Positions 35,133 to 58,889 of a DNA stretch of 64,000 bases are shown piece after piece. The notes under the pieces are model-generated. The model saw nothing but the letters and a program-made list of their open reading frames with translations, searched no databases and was not told where the DNA came from. Numbering within the stretch: position 1 is the stretch's first letter; every line of letters starts with the position of its first letter. The DNA comes from Anthoceros angustus (Eukaryota > Plantae > Anthocerotophyta). The translations under genes and the position numbers were made by a program. The stretch is from NCBI GenBank assembly GCA_010909165.1, contig MU008185.1, positions 248,001 to 312,000 on the forward strand, given 5' to 3'.

Positions 35133-36989
35133 GCCCCCAAGATTGGCGCAAAACGCAGCGCTTAAGTTGAAGCGCTCAAGTTGAAGGCAGTCGATACAAC
35201 GTCCTGCATCCTCCTTCTCCCCGTCCTTCCTTCACTTTGTCTGTCAGAACCTCTTCTCTGAAAATATTACAGCAACCATGCTCTTCAAACTTGACCTCGG
35301 AACTTGCAACATGCACGCGCTCGTCTCAATATTCGTTCCCGAGACGAGCTCGGCTGCACTCAAGAAGGCCTCTCGACTAGCGCTTTGTCAATCACAGCCA
35401 AGCCTCTCCGTCTGCCTGCGTCCACGCTGTGCTTTTGAGGATAACTGCCTCGCAGGAGGAGGAAGAGCGGACAGCGGGCAGGCTCGGGAGCGGGGACTCA
35501 GGGCAACCGGCGGGGCAGGAAGAGGCAGCTCACAGGTTCAAACTTCTCAACAACGTCCTAGATAAGCTCTTGCAACAGCAGCACAGAACAGCAAAGCCGA
35601 AGGCGTCTTGGCAACTTCTCAGGAGACAGGTTTTTGCCGAGTCCGCTTGCATCGGACGCGCGCTCTCGCAAGCAGGTGCAATATGCTGATGCAATGACGG
35701 GGACACAGAATCCATGGTGAATTGGCATCGGTGTTTAGGACACCATGATTGGAACTTCTCGTCACCTGGTTCGGCATGAATCCCCTGTGCTTTGTTTTTT
35801 TCTTCGTACACAGCGGGCAGCTCTTCCCGCGGGCTACGCAGCGACGCTCCTCAAAGTAGGAGTGCTTTTAGCATACTTAGAGGATTACTTCGCCTGCGGG
35901 AAGAGCGAGCTGCCACCGGGAAGCCGGGCGAGGACGTCTCCGGGCGGGCGGTTGGACAAGGGGGAGGGAGAGGCACCCGGCCGTGCAGGACATAGCCCGA
36001 GGATTTTGCTACCCTTCGCACTTACTTCTTCGTGAGGGTTAGGTAACTGGTATCTGCCGTCACCAGGATGCAGGATTGTCCAGACTTAACAGATTCGTGT
36101 GCCGTGTGATGCTGTCATTGGAGCAAGCGCTTTGATTCTCGCAGGTGCTCAGGCAGCCGTTCACTTTCCCACGAGCCGGCCTTGCGTAATGCTCTCCCGC
36201 AGAGCAGGAAGCTGGCTCCGTTTGTGTTCACACGGAGGAGGAGGAACAGAAATGCGTTTGTTTACATATGTAATTATGTACATATACTGGCACGGACATC
36301 GGAGTCTGATGGTCAGAGGCTGTCAGCTGGTTATGCTTATAAGCAGGGTTTATTCCTGAGGGACATACATCTGCGAGGTGGGCGCTGCCCTCCACGTATG
36401 TATGTACATATGGGAGAGCACAGGGCACACACATGTGGTGCATGACGTGGCATGGAATGTCCTTGGCTTACTCCTACAGTCCACCCCCCCTAAATGGGAC
36501 TGGTTCGGAGTGCCTTTAGAGGTCCCATTAAGGGAGGTGTCCCGATTATATTTTCCCTATTTAAAAATAATAAAAATATTATAAACTCTAAAAAATCAAA
36601 AAATACCCAAAAAAAGAAAATTTTAAATTTTGATTGATAGGTTTCACTAAAAATAAATTTTACCACTTCTTTATATAGTTGTTTGAAAGCTAGCGTATGG
36701 CATACCAAAGAGGACAGAGGGGACGGACATTTTTTTTCTGCCGCAAAACTTTTGGTGTCCGGTTTGGTGACCCGACCGAAATGGGGTAGCCCAAAGGGGA
36801 CGCACCAAAGCGGCCACTTCGCGGTCACCGGATTTCAGAAAGGGAACTTTAGGGTTTTTTCCGACTCACTCTATGTGTTTTCTCCCACGGAACAAAAATT
36901 TTTGTTCCGCAACGCTCCTATTTAGGGTCCGTAGGCCTCATAGGCAAGCCACATGCCCGCTTTTAGGGTTCATGTGCTAAGAGGGTGGA

Positions 36990-39440
36990 GCATGGTTTAG
37001 GCGGGGGTTTAGGCAACCGATTTGGCGGGCGGGCGGGCTGCGGTGGCGGCGAGGCGGCGAGGCAAGGCGGGAGGCGGAGGCGGGAGGCGGCGAGGCGGCG
37101 AGGCGGCGAGGCGGGCGGGCAGGCGGCGAGGCGGCGAGCGGGCGGCGGGGCGCGGCGCGCGGCGGGCGGGCAGGCGGCGGCGGCGAGCGGGCGGCGAGCC
37201 CACCGCCACGGACGGGGCAGGCGGCGGCGAGGCGGCGAGGCGGGGCGGGTTTTCGCGGACCGGCGAGAAGGGCGGGCGGGCTGCGGTGGCGGCGAGGGAC
37301 GGAGGCGGGAGGCGGGCGGCGGCGGCGGCGGCGAGGGACGGAGGCGGGCAGGCGGCGAGGCGGCGAGGGGCGAGGCGGGCGGGCGGCGGGGCGAGGGACG
37401 GACGAGGCGCGGCCTTCACTGGGTGACGGACGGCGGCCAACCGCAGTAAGGAGAGGCGGCGAGGCGGCGAGGCGGCGAGGCGGGGCAGGCGGCGAGGCGG
37501 CGAGGCGGCGAGGCGGCGAGGCAAGGCGGGAAGGCCGGGGAGGCGGAGGAGGAAGGCGGGCGGCGAGGGACGGAGGCGGGGCAAGGCGGGCGGCAGGCGG
37601 CGAGGCGCCACGGCAACGGAGGCGGGCGTGGCGAGCGGGCGGGCGGCGAGCGGGCGGCGAGGAGGCGCCACGGTAGCCCTCCCCATCCTTGCACCAAGCC
37701 GCAACTAACCTCGCCCCTCATTCGGGTCGCGCCACGGCAACGGAGGCGGGCAGGCGGCGGCGAGCCCACCGCCACGGACGGGCGGAGGCGGGCGGCGAGG
37801 CGGCGAGGGGCGGGTTTAGGCGGCGAGGCAAGGCGGGCAAGGCGGGCGGGCGGCGGCGAGGCAAGGCGGAGGAGGGGCTGCGGCGAGGCGGAGGCGGGCA
37901 GGCGGGCGGAGGCGGGAGGCGAGGCGGCGAGGAGGCGGCGAGCGGGCGGCGAGGGACGGACGAGGCGCGGCCTTCACTGGGTGACGGACGGCGGCGAGGC
38001 GGCCACCGCAGTAAGGAGAGGCGGCGAGGCGGCGAGGCGGCGAGGCGGGGCGAGGCGGCGAGGCGGCGAGGCGGCGAGGCGGGGAAGGCCGGGGAGGCGG
38101 AGGAAGGCGGGCAGGCGGCGAGGCGGGGCGCGGGCGGCGGCGAGGCGCCACGGGCAACGGAGGCGGCGAGCGGGCGGGCGGCGGGCGGAGGAGGAGGAGG
38201 CACGTGGGCCCTCCCCATCCTTGCACCAAGCCGCAACTAACCTCGCCCCTCATTCCTTCCCCGCCCATGGTGATGCCGAATTGTTTGATGCTCATTTCTT
38301 TGCAAACGGCCGACACGCAGATGGTACTGGTGCCACCGCAGTATTATTGTAGGCTTCCTGCGGTTGTGGGCGGGATGGTGCACCGCCCACCCTCTCCTCC
38401 TCACATGCCGCAGCCGCAGCGCGCCTCGAGCGGCGGGGCGCCACGCTGGCAGGCGCCCTCATTGTGGCGGCGGGGCGCGGCGAGCGGGCGGGCGGCGAGC
38501 GGGCGGCGAGGCGGGCGGCGGGCAGGCGGCGGGCGGGCTGCGGTGGCGGCGGGCGGAGAAGGGCGGGCTGCGTTGAGGCAAAACACGGGCGGAGGCGGAG
38601 GAGGGGCTGCGGTGGCGGCGAGGGGCGGAGGCGGGCAGGCGGGCGGGCGGGCGGGGCGAGGCGGGCGGGCTGCGGTGGCGGCGAGGAGGCGGGCCTTCAC
38701 TCAGGTGCGGGCGGGCAGGCGGCGAGGCGGCGGGCGGGCGGGCGGGCGGGGCGGGCGGGCGGGAGGCGGGAGGCGGGCGGGCAGGCGGCGAGGGGGCAGG
38801 CGGGCGGCGGCGAGGCGGGCAGGCGGGCGGGCGTGGCGAGCGGGCGGCGAGCGGCGGCGAGGCGGCGAGTGCAGTCCTCCCCATCCTTGCACCAAGCCGC
38901 AACTAACCTCGTCCTCATGGTGGGCATGAATCTGCGTGCAAGGAGAGGCGGGCAGGCGAGCCCACCGCCACTTGCATGTGTGGGGCGGCGGGCGGGGCGG
39001 CGAGGCGGCGAGGCGGCGGGCGGCGAGGCAAGGCGGGGCGGAGAAGGGCGGGGCGGCGGCGAGGCAAGGCGGAGGAGGGGCTGCGGCGAGGCGGAGGCGG
39101 GCAGGCGGGGCAAGGCGGCGAGGAGGCGGCGAGGCGGCGGCCCTACCGGGCCGAGGGACGGACGAGGCGCGGCCTTCACTGGGTGACGGACGGCGGCGAG
39201 GCGGCCACCGCAGTAAGGAGAGGCGGCGAGGCGGCGAGGCGGCGAGGCGGGGCGAGGCGGCGAGGCGGCGAGGCGGCGAGGCGGGGAAGGCCGGGGAGGC
39301 GGAGGAAGGCGGGCGGGCAGGCGGCGAGGCGGGCGGGCGGGGCGGCGGCGAGGCGCCACGGGCAACGGAGGCGGCGAGGCGGGCAGGCGGGGCGGCGAGG
39401 AGGCGGGGCGGCGAGGAGGCGGGCGGGCTGCGGTGGCCCC
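36990..39440. repeat. G-rich array of GGCGAGGC/GGCG units with duplicated unique cassettes
   Basis: An 8-mer ggcgaggc run interleaved with cassette ccccatccttgcaccaagccgcaactaacctcg (x4: ~37681, 38213, 38880, 39441) and gggacggacgaggcgcggccttcactgggtgacggac (x3). Confidence 0.9.
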
Positions 39441-39499
39441 TCCCCATCCTTGCACCAAGCCGCAACTAACCTCGCCCCTCATTCCTTCCCCGCCCATGG

Positions 39500-40070
39500 T
39501 GATGCCGAATTGTTTGATGCTCATTTCTTTGCAAACGGCCGACACGCAGATGGTACTGGTGCCACCGCAGTATTATTGTAGGCTTCTGCGGTTGTGGGCG
39601 GGATGGTGCACCGCCCACCCTCTCCTCCTCACATGCCGCAGCGCAGCCTGCAGCCCATCGTGCATGTGTGGGGCAGCGGAGGAGGGTTCCACGATCTCCT
39701 CCGAGCTCACCCGATCCTAATATGTGGAGTGAGTTGTTTCTGTGTCTTATGACCCCAAGAAGCCAATGCATCCTTTGTCCTACGAGGAGCTTGATGCGCT
39801 TTTGCAGCATGCGGAGGACCACAACGACCTCATCCGCCACATAGAGAACTACCCTTGACTTCAAGTTCTTTTCGAGCCGAGGAACGTGGTCGCAGTGTAT
39901 TTGACCGGACTCGACTTCCTATCAGAGTGCCTTCCGTGTCGGAAGCGCACTATTTCATGCATACCCATTTTGATGGGTGGCCATTGGGTCCTAACGATCA
40001 CCGTGAGGCCTCGCGTCCAAGCACCCGAGTCACCGGAGGACTTCAAGTCGTGGATGGCCAAGTTTCACCC
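39500..40070 (-). pseudogene. Ulp1/C48 SUMO-protease-like remnant
   Basis: Across frameshifts: DLKSSGDSGAW..TVI, YTATTFL, HWLLGVIRHRNNSLHILGS (cf. HWxLxVI...hLDS) and PQKP..N..CG (cf. PQQxNxxDCG). Confidence 0.55.
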
Positions 40071-40939
40071 GACGGCTTGACTCACGTGCACGGCCGCCTC
40101 GACGCTTATCGCCCCTCCCGGATTTCATCTCAACGCCTTCTACGAATTGGACGACGCCAACCATGTCTTGTGGGAGGAGATGAACGACCTCTACATCATC
40201 GAGGGCGGTGATCATGGGGTTAGATCGGGGGGTCATGTGCTTTAGGCACCGTGGCGAGGGTTTTGATAGGACTTGATGTACGAGGCCTTTACGGTTTAGA
40301 TTTGTAGGTGTCTTCGCACCCGCTTCCCACGCTTTGACTTGACCAAATTTTGACGCTTCCTCTTCGTGTATTCTCACCACTCGCCGATATCCGTGCCCAC
40401 GTTTTCAACTTGGCCTCGGTTCATGCTTGCCGCGCATCGTGTTCCCTCGTGCATTTTGGCCCGCTTCCATTCTCCTTGGCCTTGTCAACCCCGCCCCTTT
40501 CCATTCTCCTTGGCCTTGTCAACCCGGCTTTTGCCCCGGCTTTCCATGTCCACGCTTGCTTATTAATTGACAACCCATACAGGCTGCCTTCTTTCAGTGT
40601 GATTTGGGTCCGCGGAACTCGCTCTTCACAGAGGTTCGTCGCTTTGATAGCTGCTGCCTCCACTTCAAGGGGAATGCGGTTTCACACAAAGGTGATTCCG
40701 ACACGCGTCTCCACAATTTTCATGCACCATTGTCGGAAGGTCAGGACAGAACTTGCAGGGAATGTCTCTGCCCATGCCTTGCGGCTGGACCGCGCGAGAA
40801 ACCGGTTGCTGGACGCAGGAGGCTATTCCATGAGCCCTTGCGTCATGTGTCCACGCGGTGGCCCCTCCGGCCCTCACGTTTCTATCCTATCGGCGGTGAT
40901 GCCCTGTGCCCGTCGCCTTCCCTATCCATGTCTCATTGC

Positions 40940-41100
40940 CTCCCGCTTGCACCACATGCCCTAGTCGCCTGCCACCGCGACGCACCTCATATGAAAAGCG
41001 CTCAAGAGGTTAAGGGCTCTCCATGTCCACAGTGTGCAGTGCATTCCACTCCCACACCATCTCCTGCAGAGGATCCCCGTCGCCCGCAATACAAGCACAC
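40940..41100 (-). pseudogene. PHD/ePHD-like zinc finger remnant
   Basis: VCLYCGRR...GVECTAHC...(frameshift) AFHMRC...GMWCKR gives the C-x2-C, C-x3-C, H-x2-C, WC spacing. Confidence 0.5.
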
Positions 41101-41109
41101 TGCAACCTA

Positions 41110-43420
41110 TGCGATACATGTCCGGAGGTAATTTGTACACTTCAAGCCCGCCAGACGCCATGTCCTCGCCACTTGCATGTCCTACAAAACATTTGTCGTC
41201 ATCAAGAATCGCTGGTGTTCACATTCGAGACGGTCTTGGTGGCGTTCACTTACCCTCACAAGAATGCTATCGGAGGAAGCGGTGGCACCTCCGGTGCAAC
41301 ATTGCGGCGATCGTGGTCCGGGGACATAGTAGTCGTTGTCGCCCTCCTCGCCTACCCCATATGCGGCGGCCCTACCGGGCCGGCCCGCTCCTCCTCTGGA
41401 AGGCCTCCGCGGACGTGGCCAGCTATGTCATCGCCTCCGACCTCATTTTCCTCACCCTGTGCAAGTTCCACACCCGAACGAAAGTCGCCAGCTCTGTCCT
41501 CATGGTGGGCATGAATGCTGCGTGCAAGGAATGTATGTGCCAAGGGTTCGTGGTATCCAACTCACGGCTGTCCTGCAGCTCCAACATGTACCTCTTGTAC
41601 AGGAAGCCCCACTTCTCCTTGACGCCCTCCGGAAGTGCTCGATCGCCTCACACCCACGTATCCACCCACCAACCACGCCGTTATGTCTGGCACGGGCTCC
41701 GGCGTCCGGAAATTGCGCAGCCCGCATTCGGCAAGCAGAATGCGGCAAATCCCTTTCACATGACAACCAGTATCCACCTTACCTGATTGTGCACCGATGG
41801 CCCCCGAATGAAGTTCCTACCGTTCTCTCGCGGCCTCGCTGGTTCAGGTCCTCCTCAACTAGGTTGTGCTCCGCAGCGAAATCGGACCGAATCCGCTGCG
41901 GGTGCCCAAACCTACCGCCCGCCAGACGCCTTGTAGATTGTTCCTGCCCGCTTGTTGTCCTCCAGCACCGCCCACGTTATGTAGTGCGTTGCCCCATCTA
42001 TGGCCGCGTGCACCCTGAAGTGGAACATGTACATCTTGTCGACGCAAAGACAACACTCGCACCGTTAGCTTGCGTGCCTTGTGCCGCGCTATCGACTCGG
42101 CGACCACCATGTGCTCCAAGTTCCGCACACTCACAGTCCATGTGCCACATGTACATCGTGTGTATTGCACCGCGAACGCGCGCATGCGACCTCATTTCCA
42201 TGGCCTCCTACCGCATGGCTCGCAATCTTGCCGTCACACCGCCTCGGCCCCGCCTCCCTCCGCCCTCCGGAAGTGCTCGATCGCCTCCGCCTCGCACAAT
42301 CCTCACTCCCGCTCACACCGCCGCGTGATGGTCACATTTTGTAGGATGAGGTTGCGACGCCTTCTATTGTTCTCGGCGGACCCGCAGCCCTCTCCATCCG
42401 GCACCGTGCGGCCACCTCCTCAACGTCGCGGTGCACATCCCGGCTCGCTGCGAGCCCTTTCAATGTCCGCCCGCCTCCTCCTCCGCCTCTGCGATGTTCC
42501 TCAAAGTCTCCACTTGAAAGGGCCCGCCGACTGCCCTTCCCTCTCCCGCCTCCGCCCTCGCCCTCTGTTTGATGTCGAGGGCTGTGATCGCCTCCACCTC
42601 CGACACTTCGCCTCCCTTCCTCCATCGGATCCCCCCTCCCGTCTCCGCGCCTCGGCCCCTCCATCTCCCCTTGCAGCGACGCCCCATCTCCCCTCCGCCC
42701 GCCCCACTCCGCCATCCACCCGCGCCCGGCCTCACCAAGACCCTCCGCCTCCCGCCATCCTCTCATTGCCTGCCCCGCCCCTCCGCCTGCCTCCGCCTGG
42801 GCCTCGGCCCCGCCCTCCGCCTGCCCCTCCCTCCGGTTCCGCACACGGCCCCGCCTCCCCTTCCTCCCACCCGCGCGCCCACGGCCCCGCCCACCCCGCC
42901 CTCGCCCCGGATGGCGCCACGGCCCCGCCCCTCCGCCTTCCTCCTTCCCGCCCGCCCGCCTGCGCCCTCCGCCTCCCCTCCTTCCCGCCCGCCTCGCCCC
43001 ACTCCGCCTCCCTCCTCCGCCCGCCTCGGCCCCGCCCGCCGCCCCTCCATCGAACCCCATCGTCCGACTCTGCTCACGCCGCCATCCACCCGCGCCCCGC
43101 TATCACCCTCATCTCCTCCTTCCCCGCACACCGCCTCCTCCGCCCGCCTCCGCCATCAATCCGACCATCGCCAGGCGAACCCAACCCGCCCGTTCTCTGC
43201 GTCCCCATGATCGCCGCAGTGTTTCGCGACTGGGCCTATCCTCACCACGCCTGCCTCGCTGCGAGCCCTTTCAATGTCCGTCCGCCCTCCTCCGCCCCTC
43301 TGCGATGTTCCTCAAAGTCTCCACTTGAAAGGCGGCTGCCGGCCGTTCCCTTCCCTCTCCGCTCGCCCTCTGTTTGATGTCGAGGGCTGTGATCGTCTCC
43401 ACCTCACGCCCCGCTTTCCT
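41110..43420 (-). pseudogene. Intron-containing IS3/IS481-like (integrase-core, eukaryotic IS3EU-type) DDE transposase remnant
   Basis: Motifs in order across frameshifts and GT-AG introns: MWHMD; HAAIDGATHYITWAVLEDNKRAGTIY; FGHPQRIRSDFAAEH; FIRGPSVHNQ|AIEHF; ELQDSRELDTTNPWHIHSLHAAFMPTMRTELATFVRVWNLHRVR; YGVGEEG; GGLEVYK. Confidence 0.8.
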
Positions 43421-44110
43421 CCCCTTCCTCCATCGGATCCCCCCTCCCGTCCTCTCCGCGCCTCGGCCTCCATCTCCCCTTGCAGCCGCCCCATCTCCCC
43501 TCCGCCCGCCCGCCCCACTCCGCCTCGGCCTCCATCTCCCCTCCGCCTCCTCCGCCATCCTCTCATTGCCTGCCCCGCCCCTCCGCCTCTGCCTCGCCCG
43601 CCTGGGCCCTCGGCCCCGCCCTCCGCCCGTCCCTCCCTCCGGTTCCCTTGCAGCCCCCCTCCCCTTCCTCCCACCCGCGCCCGCCTGCCCACCCGCGCCC
43701 TCCGCCTCGCACCCGGATGGCGCTCACGGCCCCGCCCCTCGCCCCTTCCTCCTTCCGCTCCGCGCCCTCGCCCGCCCTCGCCCTCCTCCGCCCCTCCGCC
43801 CCGCGCCCTCGCCCTCTCCGCTCCCCTCCCTCCCTCCCTCCGCTCCGCGCCTCGGCCCCTCCGCCTCCCTCCGCCAGACGTCAGGCCCCGTTCACTTTGC
43901 CATCCACCCGCGCCCTCGTCATCACCCTCATCTCCCCTCCTTCCCCACCGTCTTAGCCCTCATCGCGCCCGCCCGCCTCCGCGCCATCAATCCGACCATC
44001 GCCAGGCGAACCCAACCCCGTTCTCTGCGTCCCCATGATCACTGCGGTGTTTGGCGTACTCGGGCCTATCCTCCCTCCCTCCGCCCTCGCCCTCTCGTTG
44101 CGTGGTCTCC
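42430..44110. repeat. C-rich (G-rich on - strand) array, ~820 bp higher-order duplication
   Basis: Cassettes ctgcgatgttcctcaaagtctccacttgaaag...gatgtcgagggctgtgatcg (~42489 and 43300) and ccatcaatccgaccatcgccaggcgaaccc (~43152 and 43984) sit in ccgcc/ccgccc runs. Confidence 0.88.
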
Positions 44111-44904
44111 CGCCGCTGGGATTCACTACTTGGAGCCGCGGTCGGGTTCAGCACCGGAGCACGCCACTTGTTCCATCTTCTGACAATGCGTGGTTTCCCG
44201 CATCTCCGGCCGTATGTCGCATAATTCCGCTTTCACGCCACCGACAGCTGTTTCATGAAATGAATGGCATGTGCCTTATTCACTTCGGCGAACGCTTTGG
44301 GTTGCTTCGCAACAGCCCCCCATGCCTAAGGACATTGATGCCTGCCTTGCTTCTTTCCACAAATCCACGATACAATGTTTCAGCAAATACCCTGACCCCA
44401 CCATTATTCCTACGCCTTTCCACCCCACAACTCTACGGTGATAGGCCACGCTGGTGTGTGCACGTTGAAGAGAAACACGAGACTCTTTGTAGCAAGCAGC
44501 CCCCCTACACTCGGGAATTTCGGGCTCCCATATACTGCGCAGTGCTCGAGGATGACGTGAGCAGCCTGCAATGCCTCCTCTTCGGCAAAGAAGCTCACAG
44601 CCTTGTCCACGTACAACACATACGCAGTCTGGTTGTCAAGGAGAAACGGCAACCGACATTGCTGCATCGGCGGCACCCCTCGTCGACTCGCGGCAATTGT
44701 CATTCGCCCCGCCGATCGCCGCATGCCATCGCCAACATGCCCATGTAGTCCCCGCCCGTCCACACATCTAAGCGGAACTGCGCGGCGGTCCATACACGAT
44801 GCACCGAGTGTCACATCCCCACTCCACCCGGCCACCCATCGCCTTTGCGGTCTCCGCATGCTCCTTTTCGCCGTAGGATGCATGGCGCCCCAGCTTCAGC
44901 AGCA

Positions 44905-45900
44905 TCGTGTCCACCACCGTCGCATGGTACACGTGGTCGCCGCGATCGAACCCACCCCACGCACACCGGTCGACCATCGTCACCAAGCACGATGACTTGC
45001 ATCCGCCTCACCCCACCACCATTGCGCACTCAACGCGCGGCCAACTCCATCGCCCGCATCCCCTTCTCCTTCCGTGTTGGACCCGCCCCAACCCACCAAT
45101 CCGCCGTGGAGGCTCCTTGTTCTTCGCAGCCTCCGCAATTCAAATGTGTCCATGTGCTGAAATAGATACCCTCGGTGCATGTGCCGCAACCCCGCCGTCA
45201 CAACTGCATTGCCCACCTCTCATCCGGAGCATCCTCCACTGCATGGTTCCATCCTGCACGCACCAAAACCACCCCACGAGTCCAAGCCCGCAGCCCTTGT
45301 CTCCTCCACCTCAAGACATGCGCCACCATGTCCCCGGTCCATCCGCTATGCGACGCGTTCGAATGTCGTCCGGCAAGCGTTCGAACACCGGCATGGACGG
45401 CGATGATGTCGACGCCTCACCACCGTCGCATGGTACACGTGGTCGCCGCGATCGAACCCACCCCACGTACACACGTCGACCATCGTCACCAAGCACGATG
45501 ACTTGCATCCGCCTCACCACACCACCATTGCTGCACTCTTCTGAACGCGGCGGCCAACTCCATCGCCTTCCGCATCCCCTTCTCCTTCCGCGTTGGACCC
45601 GCCCCAACCCACCAATCCGCCGTTGCCGGAGGCTCCTTGTTCTTCGCAGGCCTCCGCACTTCAAATGTGTCCATGTGCTGAAATTGATACCCTCGGTGCA
45701 TGTGCTGCAACCCCTGCTCGTCCACAATCTGCATTGCCCACCTCTCATCCGGAGCATCCTCCACTGCATGGTTCCATCCTGCACGCACTAAAACCACCCC
45801 ACGAGTCCAAGCCCGCAGCCCTTGTCTCCTCCACCGTCAAGACATGCGCCACCATGTCCCCGGTCCATCCGCTATGCGAGACGCGTTCGAATGTCGTCCG
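44905..45900. repeat. ~520 bp tandem duplication of coding-like sequence
   Basis: caccgtcgcatggtacacgtggtcgccgcgatcgaaccc at ~44915 and 45421; ccatgtgctgaaat at ~45150 and 45671. Confidence 0.88.
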
Positions 45901-45904
45901 GCAA

Positions 45905-48845
45905 GCGTTTCGCGAACACCGGGCATGGACGGCGATGATGTCGGCGTCCTCTACCCCGCCGTCACGGAACGCGCCGCCGCCATCGCCGCCCACGCCCGTG
46001 TCCTCGCTCGCTCCGCCCCAACGGATCCGCCGCTACCGCCTGTGGCCCCCCCCCGCAAAACAACCGCGCGAATTTCAACCCCAACCCCATGCTCACGCCC
46101 GCCTCACCACCGTCGCATGGTACACGTGGTCGCCGCGATCGAACCCACCCCACGACCGCGATTGAAGTTCTAATGTCCCTTCACCCCACGGTTTCGTGAC
46201 TCCACGCCCGGCCGCCGGAACGGTGGTCTTGCTCGCCGATGACCCGCCATGGCTCCACGATTTCCACAACTCGGATCGGGGAGAATGGAGTGTCCTCCAA
46301 CGCGCGCGCATGGACTCTTCCCCTTCCGCTTGAAATTGAATAGGGCGGGCATCGCGATTTTTCGGAGGCACCCGCAGAGGCGCGATGTCATTGCTCCTCC
46401 TGCCACACTTTAAGATACCTGCACGCGCCGCCACGTTGTCCTCGTCGACCGCAGCGGTGCATTAATTCGCCCCTCCTTTTGTGTGCACAAGCTACCTCAT
46501 TCGGCCCCACATACTCACAAGCGAACACCGCAGCCAATGAACACGCAACTTGCAGCTCATCAATAATTACCAATGGGATGGCATTTCGGAAACATGTAGT
46601 CCACAATCCCAACTGAACATCACACATCACACAACGACTTGGCCACCTCTCTACAACGGCTCGGCAATCTACGCTAGGCCATGCCATAAACCGTGTTGTG
46701 AGAAATGGCGGTCAGCACCCTCGCGCACATAGTGTCCTCGAAGTCATACAATGGAAGGAGCAATGTCCCGCCGCACGTCATGGCTGTGGGAGCTGTCCTC
46801 CGTCATCAATGGTACTTCAAACACCACAATTGGCGCCTCACCAAAGAACACGCGTCCGTAATGAAGGTGTATCCGCTCGTCGCAAAGACAACCTACGACC
46901 GTCGCGAACACCGGGCATGGACGGCGATGATGTCGGCGTCCTCTACCCCGTCGTCCACGCGAACGCTGCCCGCCGCCATCGCCGGCCCACGCCTCCGTGT
47001 CCTCGCTCGCTCCGCCCCAACGGATCCGCCGCTACCGCCTGTGGCCCCCGCCCCAACCCCAACCCCAACCCCAACCCCAACCCCAACCCCAACCCTGCTC
47101 ACGCCCGCCTCATGTGTCTTGCACCATCGACCGACCGCGATTGAAGTTCTAATGTCCCTTCACCCATGTGGTTTCGCCGTTGTCGCGCCCTCGGCGTCGT
47201 CGGAAGCAGTGGTCTTGCTCGATGACCCGCCATGGCTCCACGATTTCCACAACTCGTCGGAGAATGGAGTGTCCTCCAACGCATGGACTCTTCCCTTCCG
47301 CTTAAAATTGAATAGGCCGGGCATCGCGATTTTTCTGAGGCACCCGCAGAGGCGCGATGTGATTGCTCCTCCTGCCAGACATTAAGATACCTGCACGCGC
47401 CGCTGCGTTGTCCTCGTAAAGCGCAGCGGGTGCATTAATTCGCCTCTCCTTTTCTGTGCATAAGCGACCTGATTCGGCCCCACATACTCGCAACCGAACA
47501 CCGCAGACAATGAACACGGAACTCGTAGCTGATCAATAATCACAAATGGGATGGCATTTCAGAAACATGTAGTGCACACTCCCAACTGAACATCACACAT
47601 CACACACCGACTTGGATACCTCCCTACAATGGTTCGGCAACCTACGCTAGGCCATGCCATAAACCGTGTTGTGAGAAATGGCGGTCGCACCCTCGCGCAC
47701 ATAGTGTCCTCGAGTCATACAATGGAAGGAGCAATGTCCCCGCCGCACGTCATGGCTGTGGGAGCTGTCCTCCGTCATCAATGGTACTTCAAACACCACA
47801 ATTGGCGCCTCACCAAAGAACACGCGTCCGTAATGAAGGTGTATCCGCTCGTCGCAAAGACAACCTACGACCGTCGCGAACACCGGGCATGGACGGCGAT
47901 GATGTCGGCGTCCTCTACCCCGCCGTCACGGAACGCGCCGCCGCCATCGCCGCCCACGCCTCCGTGTCCCTCGCTCGCTCCGCCCCAACGGATCCGCCGC
48001 TGTGTGGCCCCATCCAAAACAACTGCCGCGCCCCAACCCCAACCCCACTGCTCACGCCCGCCTCACAGTCTCTTGCACAACACCCGACCGGACCGCGATT
48101 GAAGTTCTAATGTCCCTTCACCCATGTGGTTTCGCCGTTGTCGCGCCCTCGGCGTCGTCGGAAGCAGTGGTCTTGCTCGCCGATGACCCGCCATGGCTCC
48201 ACGATTTCCACAACTCGACCGTCTCGGAGAATGGAGTGTCCTCCAACGCGGCGCGCATGGACTCTTCCCTTCCGCTTGAAATTGAATAAGGCGGCATCGC
48301 GATTTTTCGGAGGCACCCGCAGAGGCGCTGGCGTCATTGCTCCTCCCGCCACACTTTAAGATTCCCGCACGCCGCCACGTTGTCCTTCTCGACCGCAGCG
48401 GTGCATTAATTCGCCTCCTTTTGTGTGCACAAGCTACCTCCTTCGGCCCCACATACTCACAAGCGAACACCGCAGCCAATGAACACGCAACTTGCAGCTC
48501 ATCAATAATTACCAATGGGATGGCATTTCGAAACATGTAGTCCACAATCCCAATCGAACATCACACATCACACAACGACTTGGCCACCTCTACAACGGCT
48601 CGGCAATCTACGCTAGGCCATGCCATAAACCGTGTTGTGAGAAATGGCGGTCAAGACCTCGCGCACATAGTGTCCTCGAGTCATACAATGGAAGGAGCAA
48701 TGTCCCCGCACGTCATGGCTGTGGGAGCTGTCCTCCGTCATCAATGGTACTTCAAACACCACAATTGGCGCCTCACCAAAGAACACGCGTCCGTAATGAA
48801 GGTGTATACTGGCCCGTCCGCAAAGACAACCTACGCACCGCGCGA
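45905..48845. repeat. Three tandem copies of a ~970 bp coding-like unit
   Basis: gattgaagttctaatgtcccttcaccc at 46160, 47139 and 48097; the tggtacttcaaacaccacaattggcgcctcacc block also occurs three times. Confidence 0.92.
47051..47092. repeat. (CCCCAA)7 / (TTGGGG)7 microsatellite
   Basis: Seven perfect units; the equivalent positions in the other two 970 bp copies have only 2-3. Confidence 0.95.
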
Positions 48846-48849
48846 ACAT

Positions 48850-51800
48850 GGTCTTCACTGTGGGTGCATGCCTCAAAGGTCGTCCCGTTCAGGAAGTTAT
48901 CTGCTGTACATCCTTGAGCACCGGAGAAAAAAAACTGACCACCTCCAAAGATAACGTGTTCACAATGGGCATCACCGCCCGAGCGTCCAAGCTGTGCACC
49001 ACGAGTCTGAACCCGTCCCCACAAGCCCCCCAACATGCAAGCACTTTTTAAACAAGACCTCCTCGGTTAGCCTCTCCTGGACCATGCTCACCTCCATGCC
49101 AAGCTGCGGTCCCGGACGAAGGCGTGCAAAATGTCGAAAAAACTCCGGATCCCCAGCCGTGATGAGGGCAACGGCCTCCTTGATGGCCGCATGTTGACGG
49201 TCCGCACTTGCCCACGAGGCCTTCTTCAGCAAAGACAACACACCCATCACCTCCGGGTAGCACGCTTTCATGTCCGCCTTGAAGGCCTTCCTCAAGAACG
49301 ATGAGCCCGGCGCATCTTGCCACACCTTCGCACGCCGTCCATCTGGCTGCCAAGGGCGTGTGCAATTGTGGCCACGGTCATGGGGCATGACACTTGCACG
49401 CCGGTCGCCAGCACCATGTACACAAGGTAGCCAAAGAACCGAGCCTGTGAGTCGAGGCCTGCGTGTTAGAATGAAAGGCCTGCAGGCTATGATGAACACT
49501 CCACACACACGCGACTCACCACACAATCGCTCATCCGCGAGATGGACTTCCCCTTTTTGATGTGGTGCAGTGTCCCCGAGCCCCGGGTTGTCCTCGCCTC
49601 AAACACGCAGTTCATGAACATGGGATTACGCGGTGCCGCCATGCCTCGCCGATGCAGCGAGTCGGCCTCACAACCGTCTCGCCTCGGCAAACTACCCCCA
49701 TGCCGGTTGCGATCTTGGACATGGAACCGTGGAACAGACTTCCCATCACAATGTTGCTTGAAGAGGTCGTACAGGGCCCCGCATTCGCTGCCGCCATGCC
49801 GCAACCACCGCCGCAGCAACTCCTCCTCATCAGCAGTGGCGGAGGTTGGTTGTGGCCATGGCGGCGTATCTTGGGCACTTCAAATGCTGAATGGCAAGAG
49901 GCGCAGGAGGTCCTACCTTCAGCACAATCCGCCTCTTACACAGGCGATGCTGCTGTCTGTGGATGGGCTCCAGAGTGGTATTTGTGAGGGCGAACCGGCG
50001 CATAGCGGAGTTGGCGGCATCGTGGGCCTCTTGCGCCACTTCCAGGTAAACTGCTTCGACGTCTCCCTCACAAACTGTTACGCTCCTGCCCGCCAGGGCG
50101 GACGCTCTCTTCCATTCTCGGTGACTGTCGTGCAGGCGCAGCAACTCCTCCTCATCAACAGAGTGGCGCAGGTTGGTTGTGGCCCATGTCTCCAGCAAGT
50201 CCTCAGGCTCTATGGCCCCTAGATCGAGGGCCGGGTCTACGTCTTCCAGCTTCAAGAGCCACGCGGCGTCACGATGAAGCCTTCTCTCGACATCGTAAAG
50301 CTCCAACCCCGGACGCCACCACCGCCGCAGAACCCTCCGTGTCTATCCGATGTCCTCGCCGCTCCATAATCGAGTGCACTTCGTCAACACCGCAGCTGGT
50401 CCGGATTCCCCATCCTCGCACTCTCTCGCGCGCCGCGCGGATGTCGAAAACATCTTGGCCTCACGCGCGCGCATTCCGTTCGCAGATGGGAGATGGCGGC
50501 TTTCTTCGCAGCCTGGAGGACGGAAGGCATCGCCATGCCGCAACCACCGCTCGTATGTTTTCAAGAATCGACGCGCGGGATGGTGGCGGCTTTCTTCGCA
50601 GCCTCCGTGAGGACGGAAGCGGCGCCATGCCGCAACCACCGCTCGTATGTTTGCAATCAGCCGATGGCGGATGGCTGCGATCGCGTTCCACCGCCTTTGG
50701 ATGCTCCGCGGGCGATCGCCATCAGCCAGCCGAGGGCGCCGCTGTCCTTTCATCTCGGAATCCAATGACTACGAAGGCCCCACTGCAGCGTGCACCGTGT
50801 TTCGAGGGCGATGACGCCTGGAAGCCACTTGGTCGAAGTCGGATCTCAGCGTCCGACCGGGAGATCGAGTCCTGTCCGGTCCACCACCAGTGTGCACGTC
50901 ATCTCCGTCGAAATCCGCTTCCCCGCCGCAGGCTCCATCCTCCTCTTCCAAGACCCCTGCTTTTTCTCGGTAGTTGCGGACCATGAACGGCGTCATCTGG
51001 GATACAGGATCCCAGACATACAACAGCGCACCTTGCAAAACGTGAGCGCTCTGTGATGCAGTGCTACCGGGCGGGAACAGGAGCGGGTCATCTGTGAGGA
51101 CTGCAGTCGGCGAACTGCGCGCTAGCACCTTCTGGTTGCGCTCGATGAAGCAACCAGGGCCCAAATTGCTGCGGGGAAGGCGGAAGAGGGCTGCCACCGG
51201 TCCACGAGTGCGGCAGCCACAGTCCCCGGTTCAAACTCAGAACCGTCATACCTCGCTCCCACGGGCATGGCAGCCGGTACGTGCAACTCCACCACTGCGC
51301 CTGCGCAATCCTCGACAAAGCGCCTCCCCATCTCGCCTCGGTCCTAAGTGGATGGCCTCGTAAATGCGATTCTCGGAACCGTAATAGAGAGCTTCTTCAT
51401 GTGCACCGCCCGCCCGCCGACGCCCGCCCTCTGCCTCCCCGGGAACCATAATCGGGTGATTGCGGCGTTGTGTGAGGGGATGTTTCCCATTGCCGCACGC
51501 ACTGCGGTGTTCCGCGTGCGGAGGGAACGTGCACCCCACCCTCACCGCCCCGGTACCGCCCGGCCGCGCCCAGATCGCCGCCGATCCGCAATGCACACGC
51601 CAAGGGTCCGCCGCAGTGCCGTGTCGCACACCGGAGGGGCCTTGCGGATTGCCTCGCGCCGTGGAATTCTAGCAGCGCAGGAGGCTTGGAAACGCGCGAG
51701 GCCGACCTTGGCGTGGGGAGGATCGAAGACATTTGCATCCTCGTCGTCGGAGTTCACCCAATCTCCGAGAATGTCGCCACCGCCATCGCAGATTCAGACG

Positions 51801-52200
51801 GCGCCCGGCCTCTCCTCGCCGCCATGTTTTCACTTGGATTGGTGCGAGTCCACCAAAAAAATGGGTGTGCCTTGGTCACGGCCTCGCGATTTCCGTCAAG
51901 GGTGGAGATGGCGAGGGGCGGCGTGTCCGCGATGGCGAACCACCGGCCGATCTGCGAGGAAGATACGGGCGCCGTCTCCCGTCTTCGTCTTCGCATGACA
52001 AGAGCGGAGGTTCATTATTTCGTGGAGTCGTGCCCCAAACGCCTCAAACCCCGCTTAGGATTAAGAATGCCCGCCTTTTACTGACGGAAACACGACATTC
52101 ATTACATCGGAAAGACGGAGATGGGCGCGCCGTCTCCGGCATGCACCTCGTCGGATGGCCGCATTGTTTAAGGCGATGGTGGAGATGAGGACATGCTTAA
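48850..52200 (-). pseudogene. Unidentified, frameshifted coding remnants of the giant element
   Basis: Protein-like pieces (KACYPEVMGVLSLLKKASW; ELYDVERRLHRDAAWLLKLED; HVLQGALLYVWDPVSQMTPFMVRNYRE) with a probable GTGAGT donor near 49520. No family recognised. Confidence 0.4.
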
Positions 52201-53049
52201 ACGCGCCCTTCTAGAAGACGCGTTGTTTATGTTTGAAGTATTCGCGAGGGACCGGACAGGAGGCCGTGGACAAGAATGCGGCCCGCGCGACGCTTGGGGA
52301 AGACGCGGGTCGCATCTTCAGCAGACAGGGCCATGCCCGGTGGCGTGAGCAGTGTTCGCGTTGCCTACAAAACATCGGCCGCTCACGGAAGGGGATTCCG
52401 ACATGACCAAGGACGGCCGTGTTCGCTCGTAGCAATTTGCGGTTTATGTCAAATCACTTCCTCCATACGTTTGTTGAACCCAAGCATATATAGTGAATTT
52501 GTCCTGCATTTCGAACGAATGGATGGCGGAATAATGATGGATATTGAGTATGAGGTTTTTGTTCACACATGGCTAGTAGGAAAAGGTTTTGGGCCAAACT
52601 ATAAGGCCCAAAAAGGATGGAACATAATGCATAATGTTCAATTTTCAAAGGCCAAGGAAGATAGTGGTACATATAGCAGAGGACTTGACAACCTTGGCCT
52701 TTGGGATATTTGAAAGGAGGAAACATCATGCATGGTGTGTCCATGCCAAAGGCCAAGGAAGGCGAGAGGCATATACTACAAAGGACATGTCATCCTTGGC
52801 ATTTGGGATTTGTCAACGAAACATCATGCATGTTGTTTCAACCACCAAAGGCCAAGGAAGTTAGTGCTACATATACTACGGTAGGCTTGGTCTTCCCATA
52901 TGTGTGTGTCAATAGTTGGATGGCATGCGGATGTAAAGGTAAAACATCTTTAGGGTTTAGCGAAGGGGCGTTGGCGTGTTAGAGCATGTGCACATATGCA
53001 TGTAATCCGCATATATAGACATAAATATTACATATGTCTTGTTCCTTGG

Positions 53050-54290
53050 ACTTTGGCCTATAGTAGGATTGATAGGACATGCTAGCATCCTTGAAAGGTT
53101 GGTATATAATATATGGATATATATGTAGGAGAAAGTTGAAAACTAAGCATGTCACGCAGATGTGCTCGTTTTTCTTCCTCTATCCCTTGCAAAGCAAATT
53201 TTCCATGCATCGTCGATAAAGTTTCTTGGCATATGCCTAAGGATCTTTGTGCAGTAGCAATGGAAAAGCTTCTTATTTTTGTTTCCCTTTTCTATGTATC
53301 GCGAAAGGGTTTTCCTTTATATGCATCAATGAAAAGGGTCCTTGCACTTTGGTACAAGTGATAATGTCTTCGTCTTGGAAAAGAGGTATATTATGTTTCT
53401 ATATATGCGGGAAAAATACCGTATACACCGCATAATATGTGAGAAGTTGTGCTCTCTAGTTTTGCCTTCTTCTATCCTTCGTCGATGGCAATGTTTCCCA
53501 TGCATCATGAACAAAGTTCCTTGGGGCATGGGGAATGAACTTTGTCCATGATGCATGCGAAAACTGCATATGGTTTTTGCCCTTTTTTCGTGCGAAGCTT
53601 CAGGGAAAATGGTCCTTGGCCTTTGGTAGAAGTGAATGGTAATGTCTTCATCTTAGAACTAAGGTATATTATGTATGTCTATATATGCAAGAATAACACC
53701 GTTAACGTGCATGATAGGATAGAAGTTGTGTTGTGGGTTTTTGCCTTTTGTGCTTCGCGCATCGCTTTTTTTCCATGCATCCTGGACAGAGTTCCTTGGC
53801 CTATGGCGAAGGAACTGTTTCCAGGGTGCATTGAAAAGTTCCTTTCCATATGTTACCTTTTGTATGCTTCGTGCATCTTTCCCGACATGTGGGAAAAGGC
53901 TCCTTGGCCTTTGGCACATGTGACTATGAATGTATTCGCTGCTGAACCGAGGTATATCATGTATGTCTCTATATGTGCGAATAACAACGTAAACTCGCAT
54001 GACATGGGCGAAGTTTTGTTTTGGTTTTGTCCTTGTAATCTTCGCTGGCAATTCTTTGAATGCATCCTCCAAAACCTTGGCCCATGGGGATTGATTTTTC
54101 CCACGATGCGTGGAAATTTTCCTTATGTTTTTCCCGATGCTTGGCCTATGTGTATGCTTGGCCAATGGAATTGTCTCTACATGCATCATCGAAAAGGGTC
54201 CTTCGCCTATGGTACAAGACATTGTTCATGACCGGTCTTTGAAACTAGTTATATCATACATGGCTATATATGTAGGAATAACGTGGAAAA
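53050..54290. repeat. AT-richer degenerate ~285 bp tandem repeat (4-5 copies) in the element centre
   Basis: Recurring aggtatat(t/c)atgt...tatatg...aata block at ~53385, 53660 and 53950, with weaker copies near 53100 and 54250. Confidence 0.7.
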
Positions 54291-55499
54291 CAAACATGGT
54301 GCGGTTGGTATACGATTTTCCCTCCGCATCGCGGGCGTAAATCATTGGCCACATGGCGGATGACGTTTTGGATGATGCATGCCATTACGTTGTCCCGCAT
54401 GACCGCACCGCTCAAGGTTGTGGAGTCCGAGGCACAAACGCCAAGGAACGGCAGCAAACTCGCCCCGTCCGGCCGCGATCCACAACGGCGTGAACGTTGG
54501 GAAGCGATCCGAACTTGCCGTGATGGGCGGAACGAATCGGCCATACCGAGGGAAAGAGCAGGAAGCGGCCGAGGAAGAATGGCGAGGGGCGGCGGGGCGC
54601 GAGACAATGGAAGCGGACGACCGTGCATAGAACGGCGGGGCCGCGCTGCCATCCCGGTGTTGTAAGGCGATTGGTGTGGAGGTGATTATGCGTGCGATGG
54701 ACACCTCCCGCCTCTACACGGGTGTAGGTGTGCGGAACCGCGGTGGATGACGAACACGCCAAGTGTGATGGATGGGAGGGAAGGAGCCGAGTGCAGTGCG
54801 CGTGCTCTGGCGATGGCGGACGACAATGGGCAATCGCTTTTCCGCGCACATCCTTGGAATGGAAGCGGAGGAGTTTGCATGGTGGCTAGTGGAAACGCCG
54901 AGGAGGTGGTGCGGAAGGGAGGACTTACAGTGCAGCTTAACGATCACAACACACGAGCGCAGAAGGGATTGTCGGCGTCAGCGGTGTCTGTGGCCGCCGA
55001 GGGAGGTGAAGCTCCGGTGGGACAAAGGGAAAGGAATCGGGAGGACGAGTGGCCCAAGCGGGATGGCTGTGGAAGGGAAGGCGGAGGAGGAGGCGGGGAG
55101 TGGCATGGATGATGGGAGGGCACGCCTCCCCATGGCCATGGCGACGGCGGCATGGTGCGGAAGGGGTCTAGCAGACCATTTTGTTTGCTGTTGCTATTTT
55201 TGCTTGCTATGCGATCACGCTATGACCTGCTGCACATTAGTGGCAATGGTAGTAATACTGGCGGTGGCAGCCGCAGCTTTTGTTTGTGTGGACCGAGACG
55301 GGTGACCCGGTCGGCGCCATTATATGCAATTGGTAGGAAACCCCCAGAAAATGATTCTGAATAGTGATGTGTTTTAGGCGGTCCAGTATACGCTCCACAG
55401 CGAGTGTCATGTGAAGAGGAAAGGGGTTGGCGGTTAAGGACACGAACACAAGGAGGGCCAAAAGGGTTGACAAATCGCTAGTGCACATAAATGTCATGG

Positions 55500-58400
55500 T
55501 TGCCATGCGGGTTAGGCGGTCGCCCGCCTCCCCATGGAGGCGGGAGTAAAGCCGAGGTCGATCAAGGAGGGGCGATTGCCGCCGAGACCGAGGCCGAGGG
55601 GAGGGCATCGTGCCTCCCCATGGAGAAGGAGTCGGGCGGGGCGCCTCCCCATGGCCATGGCGATGGCGGGGCGCCTCCCCATGTCCATGGCGACGGAGGG
55701 CACGCCTCCCCATGGAGAGGCGGCGGTGGCGCCATCCCGCAAGGCCGGCGCAATTGGAAACAACGACGCAAAGGCGCGGCGGGCGGGCGGGAGTAAAGCC
55801 GAGGTCGATCAAGGAGGGGCGGGAGTGATGGAGAAGGAGACAAGCGCGGTGGCGGGAGGCGGGGAGGGGAGGGAGGCGGCGGCATGGTGCCCGCACTTGC
55901 CGGGCGGAGGGCACAGCCACTCTTCCTTGGCGGGAGGGCGGCGGAGGGCGGCAGGAGAAGGGGAAGCGAGGGGAGAGGCCTCCCCATGGCCATGGCGACG
56001 GCAGAGGGGCGGCGCGGCGGGCAGCAGGGGCGGGAGGCATCGTGCCTCCCCATGGAGAAGGAGGCGGAGGGGCGGCCTCCCCATGGTGGCGGCGGCAGCG
56101 GCGGGGCCCAGCAATGGCGCAGCGGGGAGGGGAGGCCGCCTCCCCATGTCCATGACGGAGGCGAGGGGCGAGCCGCCCGCCTCAAGGAAAGGGGCAGGTG
56201 GCCTCCCGATGGAGGCGCAGGCGGGGGCGGGGGCGGCAGCGGGGAGGGCACCGCCTCCCCATGGAGAAGGAGCGGGCGGGGCAGAGGCGCCTCCCGATGG
56301 AGGCGGCGGCAGGCGCCTCCCGGCGGCGGCGGGAGGGGAGGGGGCCTCGCCTCCCCATGGCCATGGAGACGGAGGCGGGAGGGCGAGCCGCCCGCCTCAA
56401 GGAGGGGGGCTGTGGCCTCCCGGCGATGGAGGCGCAGGGGAGGGCATCGTGCCTCCCCATGGCCATGGGCGGCAGAGGCGCCCGCCTCCCCATGGAGAAG
56501 GAGCGGGCAGAGGCGCCTCCCCGAACGATGGAGGCGGCAGGGGGAGACTGTGCCTCCCCATGGAGGCGGGCGGAGGGGAGGCGCCTCGCCTCCAAGGAAC
56601 GGTGGCCTCCCCATGGAGAGGCGGGCGGGGAGGGCGGCAGGAGGCGGGGAGGGGAGACTGCCTCCCCATGGAGAAGGGGCGGGCGGCAGTGCAGGCGCCT
56701 CGGAGATGGAGGCGGCAGTGGCCTCCCCATGGCCATGGCGCAGCGGGGAGGGCACTGCCTCCCCATGTCCATGGCGACGGAGGCGGGAGGCGAGCCGCCC
56801 GCCTGAGGAGGGGGGGCCAGGCCTCCCGGCGATGGAGGCGGCAGCGGCGGGTGCCCAGGCGGCAGTGCGGGGAGGGCCGCCTCCCCATGGAGAAGGAGTC
56901 GGGCGGGCAGAGGCGCCCCCGGCGATGGAGGCGGCGGCAGCGGGGGAGGCGCAGCGGGGAGGGGAGGCCGCCTCCCCATGGCCATGGAGGCGGGGGCGGA
57001 GGGCGAGCGCCGCCTCAAGGAAAGGGGCGGGGCGGTGGCCTCCCGGCGGCGCGGAGGCGGCGGTGGCGCGGGGAGGGCGAGGGGAGGGCGGCGCCTCCCC
57101 ATGGTGATGGACGGAGGCGGCGGGGAGGCGGGGCGCGGGGAGGCGAGGGGAGGCGGGAGGGGCGAGCCGCCCGCCTCGAAAGGCAGTGGCCTCCCGGCGA
57201 TGGAGGCCGCAGCGGGGAGGGCAGCCTCCCCATGTCCATGGCGAGGGGAGGAGGAGGCACGCCTCCCCATGGAGAAGGAGTCGGGCGGGCAGAGGCGCCT
57301 CAACGATGGAGGCGGCGGCAGTGCGGGGAGGGGAGACTGCCTCCCCATGGCGGCGGAGGCGGGCGGAGGGGAGGGCAAAGGCGCCCGCCTCAAGGAAAGG
57401 GGCGGGGGCGGCCTCCCGGCGATGGAGGCGGGCGGGCGGGCGGCGGCAGTGGGGAGGGGAGACTGCCTCCCCATGGAGAAGGGGCGGGGGGCAGAGGCGC
57501 CTCCCCGGAGATGGAGGCGGCGGGCGGCAGTGGCCTCCCAGCTGGCGCAGGGGAGGGCAGCCTCCCCATGTCCATGGCGACGGAGGCGGAGGCGAGCCGC
57601 CCGCCTGAGGAGGGGGGGCCAGGCCTCCCGGCGATGGAGGCGGCAGCGGCGGGTGCCCAGGCGTGGCGCGGGGAGGAGGAGCGGGGAGGCGCCTCCCCAT
57701 GGAGAAGAGTCGGGCGGGGCGGGGCGCCTCCCGGCGATGGGCGGCGGCAGGGGCCCAGGCGTGGCGGAGGCGCCTCCCCATGGCCATGGGCGGGGCGTGG
57801 AGGCGAGCCGCCTCCCCATGGAGAAGGGGCGGGGCATGGCCTCCCCTCGGCGATAGGCGGCGGTGGCGGCGGGGAACCCCAGGCGGGGCGGGGAGGCGAG
57901 CCGCCTCCCCATGGTGATGGACGGAGGCGGCGGGGAGGCGGGGCGCGGGGAGGAGGCGGAGGCGGGAGGGCGAGCCGCCCGCCTCGAAAGGCAGTGGCCT
58001 CCCCGGCGATGGAGGCCGCAGCGGGGAGGGCAGCCTCCCCATGTCCATGGCGAGGGGAGGGCACGCCTCCCCATGGAGAAGGAGTCGGGCGGGCAGAGGC
58101 GCCTCCCCGAACGATGGAGGCGGCGGCAGTGCGGGGAGGGGAGACTGCCTCCCCATGGCGACGGAGGCGGGGCGGAGGGGCGGGCAGAGGCGCCCGCCTC
58201 AAGGAAAGGGGCGGGCAGGCCTCCCGGCGATGGAGGCGGGGCGGGGCGGCAGGCGGAGGCGAGCACAAGGGGAGGAGGAGGCTGCCTCCCCATGGAGAAG
58301 GGGCGGGGGGCAGAGGCGCCTCCCCGGAGATGGAGGCGGCGGGCAGAGGCGCCTCCCAGCTGGCGCAGGGGAGGGCAGCCTCCCCATGTCCATGGCGACG

Positions 58401-58850: not shown

Positions 58851-58889
58851 TGGAGGAGGAAGGCAACCCCGCTTTGGGGACGACGGGTC

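Follow-up and report, generated by a model that had tools for sequence, protein, structure and literature searches.

The clubmoss Selaginella lepidophylla yielded the GingerRoot transposons described in 2019 (Cerbin, Wai, VanBuren & Jiang; PMC6839031), which also occur in other lycophytes, mosses, fish, corals, sea anemones and oysters (PMC6839031). They possess TA..TA ends, generate a target-site duplication (TSD) of 6 bp and measure 3.9-12.9 kb, with terminal inverted repeats (TIRs) of 100-150 bp in S. lepidophylla (PMC6839031). GingerRoot and the Repbase superfamily IS3EU have been placed in one lineage near bacterial IS3/IS481, characterized by TA..TA termini and 6-bp TSDs (Kojima & Bao 2023, PMC10045372), and the ends of IS3EU have been given as TAYGG..CCRTA, with TIRs of more than 30 bp and a 6-bp TSD (Kojima 2025, PMC12730594). 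Here, we analyzed a stretch of 64,000 nucleotides from Anthoceros angustus (GCA_010909165.1, contig MU008185.1, positions 248,001 to 312,000 of the forward strand; hereafter the window, whose own numbering is used throughout), in which a sequence-only reading had noticed motifs of a DDE integrase on the minus strand. These motifs very probably belong to the decayed transposase gene of a 25-kb IS3EU/GingerRoot DNA transposon that is inserted in a land-plant chromosome.

Termini of the element and related elements

Comparison of the window with itself using blastn revealed a 56-nt inverted match with 87.5% identity (36695-36749 versus 61997-61944), beyond which only weaker patches were observed. 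Based on this match and the terminal pattern, the left TIR was placed at 36696..36751 on the plus strand, where it starts with TATGGCATACCAAAG, and the right TIR at 61941..61996 on the minus strand, its plus-strand end being GGTATGCCATA. At base level, the left end is directly preceded by CTAGCG (36690..36695), and the right end, reading CTTTGGTATGCCATA, is directly followed by the same hexamer (61997..62002), so that the TSD is perfect (6/6 identical). The termini are TATGG (36696-36700) and CCATA (61992-61996), i.e., TA...TA. Exactly two copies of the 27-nt terminus are present in the window, inverted relative to each other, whereas 100 shuffles gave none. GC content is approximately 0.40 in both flanks and steps to 0.52-0.84 inside, and the TIRs, the TSD and these steps together delimit a whole element of 25,301 bp (36696..61996) within AT-rich host DNA. 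No further copy of the TIR was detected within the element, the exact TIR had no match among metagenome contigs, and the subterminal motif CCAAAGRGGAC was no more frequent than expected by chance.

Three structural properties of IS3EU/GingerRoot are thus found at this locus: a 6-bp TSD, TA...TA termini of the form TATGG..CCATA, and a TIR above the 30-bp figure given for IS3EU. Since the element carries both the 6-bp TSD and TAYGG..CCRTA ends, it bears the published hallmarks of the superfamily. The sequence-only reading had proposed an unexpected class of transposase for plants, a view that does not hold, as IS3EU/GingerRoot has been known in lycophytes and mosses since 2019 (PMC6839031); a match to a known plant transposable-element superfamily, which that reading had itself named as the outcome that would speak against it, is what the 6-bp TSD and the TAYGG..CCRTA ends provide. 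The element is very probably a non-autonomous member of IS3EU/GingerRoot, a class already known in plants.

To find relatives, a 74-aa C-terminal piece of the transposase relic described below was used in a HMMER search, which returned seven short fragments leading to L001, a short-read contig from run SRR2148099 on which fragment P0001 is located, and to the Logan contigs L002-L007 (where P0002 is located). The latter contigs (e.g., L002:372-6925) contain a complete element of 6,554 bp with TATGG..CCATA ends and a 35-nt TIR, and L006 represents this element exactly from end to end. The hexamer TATATC is found immediately to the left of the element in L002 and L003 and immediately to its right in L005, i.e., as a 6-bp TSD. 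Its transposase contains an HTH_21 domain and the Pfam integrase core domain rva_4 (PF24764), the latter with an expectation value (E) of 1e-29, compared with just 1e-5 for rve. Independently of the window, these contigs link an rva_4 transposase to TATGG..CCATA ends and a 6-bp duplication, and rva_4, of which we found no mention in the literature, is shown here to correspond to elements with IS3EU/GingerRoot hallmarks. We also observed that the transposase of L002-L007 is interrupted by a gap of ~140 nt, located elsewhere than the intron of the window copy, and that this element contains several further open reading frames (ORFs) with no Pfam match.

Those full-length relatives of the relic that have a named source originate from basidiomycetes, Diversispora, bivalves, cyprinid fish, cnidarians, a sea urchin, a nemertean and sponges, which agrees with the earlier statement that this family is frequent in animal and fungal genomes; the taxonomic spread of rva_4 relatives is the same as that reported for GingerRoot/IS3EU. 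These full-length proteins match the NCBIfam IS481 and IS3 transposase profiles with E of 1e-8 to 1e-17, well below the curated cut-offs, and the label of an IS3/IS481-like DDE integrase is therefore retained.

The locus could alternatively represent a Ginger2/TDD transposon or the integrase remnant of a long terminal repeat (LTR) retrotransposon. All of these enzymes are integrase-fold DDE proteins, and 6-bp TSDs are also listed for Ginger2/TDD, Maverick/Polinton and some LTR elements (PMC6839031). However, the preference of the full-length relative for rva_4 over rve, the TAYGG..CCRTA ends reported for IS3EU, and the lack of reverse transcriptase, RNase H, protease or LTRs nearby make such an origin very improbable. 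The features of a Gypsy-type LTR retrotransposon integrase were likewise not found: the terminal repeats are inverted rather than direct, and no other Pfam domain was present in the scanned ORFs of the element. An IS3EU/GingerRoot transposase is an IS3/IS481-like DDE enzyme lacking the HHCC zinc finger and the GPY/F domain; the window holds a core relic in which the D, D and E codons are present, and this copy lacks its N-terminus.

The transposase relic, its introns and its frame damage

All motifs listed in the sequence-only reading are present on the minus strand, between 42147 and 41426, where translation shows them to be spread over three reading frames. The first catalytic Asp lies in WHMD (42136..42147, frame 0), a piece too short to be scored alone, whose placement relative to the next piece agrees with the family consensus WH.DG..K. 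It is followed by the KMYMF/IDG piece, KMYMFHFRVHAAIDG...NKRAGTIYKA (41930..42037, frame 2), which corresponds to positions 18-53 of the rva_4 profile and 244-279 of a profile built from relatives, and by GRFGHPQRIRSD...RGRER (41821..41916, frame 0; GRFGHPQRIRSD itself at 41916-41881), which corresponds to positions 286-318 of the relatives' profile (E 0.0043) and includes RIRSD (41895-41881), with the codon of the second catalytic Asp at 41883-41881. The next piece, GRNFIRGPSVHNQ (41783..41821, frame 2; positions 317-329 of the relatives' profile), matches RAYLTGSSVHNQ of L001 and forms the exon end preceding the first intron. Beyond this intron, AIEHFRRA (41623..41646, frame 0) contains the catalytic Glu codon (41640-41638), and the C-terminal piece VKEKWGFLYKRYM...NPWHIHSLHAAFMPTMRTELATFVRVWNLHRVRKMR (41426..41623, frame 2), which reads VKEKW...NPWHIHSLHAAFMP...WNLHRVRK on the minus strand, covers rva_4 positions 120-173 and positions 345-399 of the relatives' profile. 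A C-terminal tail, AAYGVGEEGDND...SILVR (41254..41373, frame 0), has a weak counterpart in a downstream exon of L001 (RAAAYGVGEEGDND versus RDAAYGAGKEGARD, E 0.003); an AAYGxGxEG motif in this tail, upstream of a candidate second intron, is seen downstream in L001 as well. Hence the codons for D (WHMD), D (RIRSD) and E (AIEH) are all still legible.

Similarity of these pieces to the family was assessed with two kinds of profiles. Against Pfam rva_4, whose gathering cut-off is 26 bits, the region 41426-41647 on the minus strand reaches 32.7 bits (E 7.6e-8), while the IDG piece scores 13.6 bits (E 0.056) at profile positions collinear with those of the C-terminal piece. The window matches rva_4 as fragments only, the domain being divided among three frames and one intron. 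In addition, the profile from 15 full-length relatives was compared with the complete set of 2,025 stop-to-stop pieces from six-frame translation of the window. Only four of them matched (E 4.9e-6, 0.0043, 0.15 and 0.41), all at the relic, on one strand and in profile order. Since these four matches are collinear and none occurs elsewhere, the motif match is not due to chance, and the relic is the sole copy in the window by this search. The C-terminal piece is also 36% identical to L001 over 59 aa (E 2e-14). The catalytic motifs reported on the minus strand are therefore confirmed, both by rva_4 and by the relatives' profile.

Regarding introns, for each frame change we enumerated every GT/GC...AG pair able to join both frames and translated the short candidate junctions. 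The first of the two introns proposed previously, CAG|GTAAGG...GTGTGAG|G (136 nt, phase 0, 41647..41782 on the minus strand), proved credible: its excision restores the frame and rebuilds SVHNQ|AIEHFRRA, and L001 has a GT-AG intron of 115 nt (L001:98-212) at the same codon (SVHNQ|RIEKFWRQ). On these grounds, the assignment of 41782..41647 as a true spliceosomal intron of the transposase gene is well supported. Because it is common to the divergent relative L001, this intron should be older than the present copy, and the sharing of this position inside the catalytic motif by divergent copies speaks for long residence in intron-bearing genomes and against fresh arrival from bacteria. The second one, AGG|GTAAGT...TTTTGTAG|G (72 nt, phase 0, 41182..41253 on the minus strand; proposed previously as GAGG|GTAAGT), is in frame and has good sequence signals, and is regarded as a candidate only. 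It would be followed by a candidate last exon of 24 codons plus a stop (41107..41181, minus strand), for which no Pfam match was found.

A different picture emerged for the remaining junctions. No GT/GC-AG pair can span the frame changes at ~41925, ~41821 and 41623; at the last of these, a single base is common to both frames (a 1-nt break), and only given a one-base shift at this site does the sequence continuing from AIEHFRRA align without gaps to RIEKFWRQ-VW... of L001. As these three junctions leave no room for any intron, they represent frameshifts, and the gene is broken rather than merely spliced. Moreover, a stop codon (41425-41423) directly follows WNLHRVRKMRSEAMT (WNLHRVRK), after which the tail switches frame again. 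The gap of ~100 nt between WHMD and KMYMF (42135..42038) was also considered as an intron but does not behave as a clean one: the GTGAGT after WHMD has no frame-compatible acceptor; stop-free joins across this gap would need GC-AG introns of 71, 59 or 32 nt or a GT-AG intron of 41 nt, and the resulting spacing departs from the family consensus. Sequencing or assembly error was rejected as the cause of the frameshifts, because two host ORFs of this contig, 3.0 and 3.4 kb long, run without interruption; the frame breaks are thus mutations and not assembly indels.

The N-terminal DNA-binding part, which comprises ~230 residues in the relatives, had no match anywhere in the window when the relatives' profile was used, and the place of the expected N-terminal coding region is occupied by minisatellite arrays that are G-rich on the minus strand and lie directly upstream of the relic (42290..44130). 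Accordingly, the span of 41110-43420 originally assigned to the gene needs to be divided: the relic itself occupies 41.4-42.15 kb, while ~42300-43420 is G-rich minisatellite with no detectable coding similarity. Neither the continuous spliced ORF nor the DNA-binding N-terminus of a functional transposase is found in this copy. Judged from its reading frames, the transposase gene is a dead, frameshifted and 5'-truncated pseudogene with at least one genuine intron. The sequence-only reading had pictured an intact, intron-containing gene, which might be an integrase-derived host gene, possibly a domesticated one. Such a gene would be consistent with the retained D, D and E codons and with the one intron conserved in a relative, but it is extremely improbable in view of at least three frame changes without a possible intron, the stop after WNLHRVRK, the N-terminal domain that could not be found in the window, and the location of the relic inside a TIR/TSD-bounded element; the intact long host ORFs nearby oppose an explanation by assembly error.

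The history of the pseudogene may be reconstructed as follows. The element would have inserted at a CTAGCG target in a land-plant chromosome, duplicating the 6 bp. In active members, as suggested by the literature and by the enzyme family, an RNase-H-fold DDE transposase related to IS3/IS481 would bind the terminal inverted repeats, and the element would be excised and then reinserted with a 6-bp staggered cut (cut-and-paste). The present copy is predicted to be no longer able to make the enzyme, given at least three frame breaks, the stop after WNLHRVRK and an N-terminus replaced by G-rich minisatellite.

Host contig, origin and interior of the element

The contig bears an intact 1,019-aa PLS-type PPR protein gene with E and DYW domains, an R3H-SUZ ORF and a U-box ORF. 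The presence of a PPR-DYW gene identifies the contig as land-plant DNA, in line with the setting assumed previously. Among named relatives of the PPR protein, the best ones belong to the lycophyte Diphasiastrum complanatum (46-50% identity across the entire length), compared with 35-43% identity for ferns, Cryptomeria, Ginkgo, a liverwort and a moss. By this similarity the host would be lycophyte-like, and lycophytes and bryophytes are the plants in which GingerRoot has been reported.

Phylogenetic analysis was carried out on 64 columns of the C-terminal exon. In the resulting tree, the window sequence groups with fragments P0001, P0003, P0008 and P0009 (SH-like support 0.82) and is separated from the animal and fungal proteins sampled; identity to any relative reaches ~40% at best, over 55 residues. 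This grouping fits long residence in an intron-bearing lineage, with no sign of recent transfer, although an alignment of 64 columns is too short to decide the matter. These data also bear on a foreign source of the DNA (contamination from fungi or animals, or chimeric assembly) and on very recent horizontal arrival. The abundance of the family in fungi and animals and a GC content far above that of the flanks could be taken to suggest such a source. However, the identical CTAGCG on both sides implies that the AT-rich flanks were contiguous before insertion, which argues against a chimeric join or a contaminant, and plant genes reside on the same contig. Considering also that the closest relatives found share only ~40% identity and fall with the window rather than with the sampled animals and fungi, and that the copy is heavily decayed, a foreign or very recent origin is highly improbable.

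The interior of the element is mostly tandem repeat. On the plus strand, G-rich minisatellite arrays with units of 8-33 nt are organized in higher-order repeats of 560-1200 bp (37000..39500), and a second large G-rich array with a GC content of 0.69-0.80 is located at 55500..61000; internal tandem repeats (~510 bp x2 and ~970 bp x3) occupy 44912..48848. Pfam matches were also absent from ten further ORFs of the element, and Rfam and tRNA scans of the window detected nothing. Several smaller features were also observed. The start of the AIEHFRRA exon is repeated exactly over 27 nt at 42261-42287, just below the minisatellite and ~60 nt upstream of WHMD, and a 35-nt copy (97% identity) of the FMPTMRT-coding stretch of the transposase exon lies in the left G-rich array (38911-38944); such scattered transposase scraps suggest that the element has been rearranged internally. 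A perfect (CCCCAA)x7.5 microsatellite is found at 47051-47095, within one of the ~970-bp repeat units. An AT-rich island at 52500-54500, with a host-like GC content of 0.37-0.48, contains 100-bp and ~275-bp tandem repeats and has no Pfam match; it could represent host DNA taken up by the element, a process reported for GingerRoot, or else a nested insertion.

Outside the element, the PPR-E-DYW ORF (3369-6428, minus strand) is intronless, and its C-terminus reads ...CSCGDRQ in place of the usual DYW. An inverted fragment of 430 nt (26865-27295) is 80% identical to part of this ORF and is probably a PPR pseudogene fragment. The ORF at 30783-34196 (minus strand, 1,137 aa) carries a U-box at its N-terminus and shows internal duplication into two halves (30826-31123 ~ 32284-32584); a word search found no relative of it at E 1e-20. 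Just beyond the right end of the element, two tandem units of ~670 bp (62634-63985) are 96% identical to each other.

Comparison with described systems

Several properties of the locus weigh against its assignment to IS3EU/GingerRoot. Only one copy of the ends is present in the window, without a second insertion or an empty site. The element is twice the size of the largest published GingerRoot (25.3 versus 12.9 kb), and its well-matching terminal repeat is ~55 nt long, versus 100-150 bp in S. lepidophylla. A lycophyte-like host lineage is pointed to by PPR similarity alone. Membership was judged from structural hallmarks, Pfam and relatives, with published GingerRoot and IS3EU elements compared by description, and is on that footing highly likely. 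Finally, the relic spans ~1 kb of the 25.3 kb, and could in principle be a passenger. It might then be an older nested insertion remnant, with the TIR/TSD pair belonging to another large element, and both the single available copy of the ends and the patchwork of arrays with gene scraps in the interior would be compatible with this. However, TATGG..CCATA together with a 6-bp TSD is exactly the published signature of the relic's own superfamily, the independent rva_4 element in L002-L007 has the same ends, and neither another transposase-like ORF nor an internal TIR copy was found in the element. A passenger is therefore improbable, and we favor a relic that belongs to the element enclosing it.

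For annotation purposes, 36696-61996 is best masked as a single IS3EU/GingerRoot element, without a gene call for the relic. Beyond correct annotation the locus matters little, apart from minor points for transposon specialists. What is unusual is a very large GingerRoot-type element that consists for the most part of tandem arrays rich in GC and resides in an AT-rich genome; the unusual traits are limited to its size, the GC-rich arrays and the conserved intron position. It is conceivable, if rather unlikely, that the window element and the Logan fragments P0001, P0003, P0008 and P0009 form a distinct, long-resident plant sublineage with a conserved phase-0 SVHNQ|RIE intron, which grows into satellite-filled giants of 25 kb and whose host lies outside lycophytes and mosses (a fern, a hornwort or another seed-free plant). 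If true, such a sublineage would widen both the range of hosts and the range of sizes known for IS3EU/GingerRoot.

Among the described systems, GingerRoot resembles the window element in being plant-resident and in having an integrase-related DDE transposase, a 6-bp TSD, 5'-TA...TA-3' termini and TIRs, whereas the window element differs in its very GC-rich minisatellite interior and in its frameshifted, 5'-truncated transposase pseudogene. With the fungal IS3EU elements of Repbase it has in common the 6-bp TSD, TIRs of more than 30 bp and TAYGG..CCRTA ends (TATGG..CCATA here); these fungal elements bear extra genes (TET/JBP and alpha-kinase; PMC12730594), whereas no second gene of any kind is detectable in the window element. 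As to bacterial IS3/IS481, the full-length relatives of the relic match the NCBIfam profiles across the helix-turn-helix region and the catalytic core and have the same HTH_21-plus-core architecture, but they differ in belonging to eukaryotes and in possessing introns, TA..TA ends and a TSD fixed at 6 bp.

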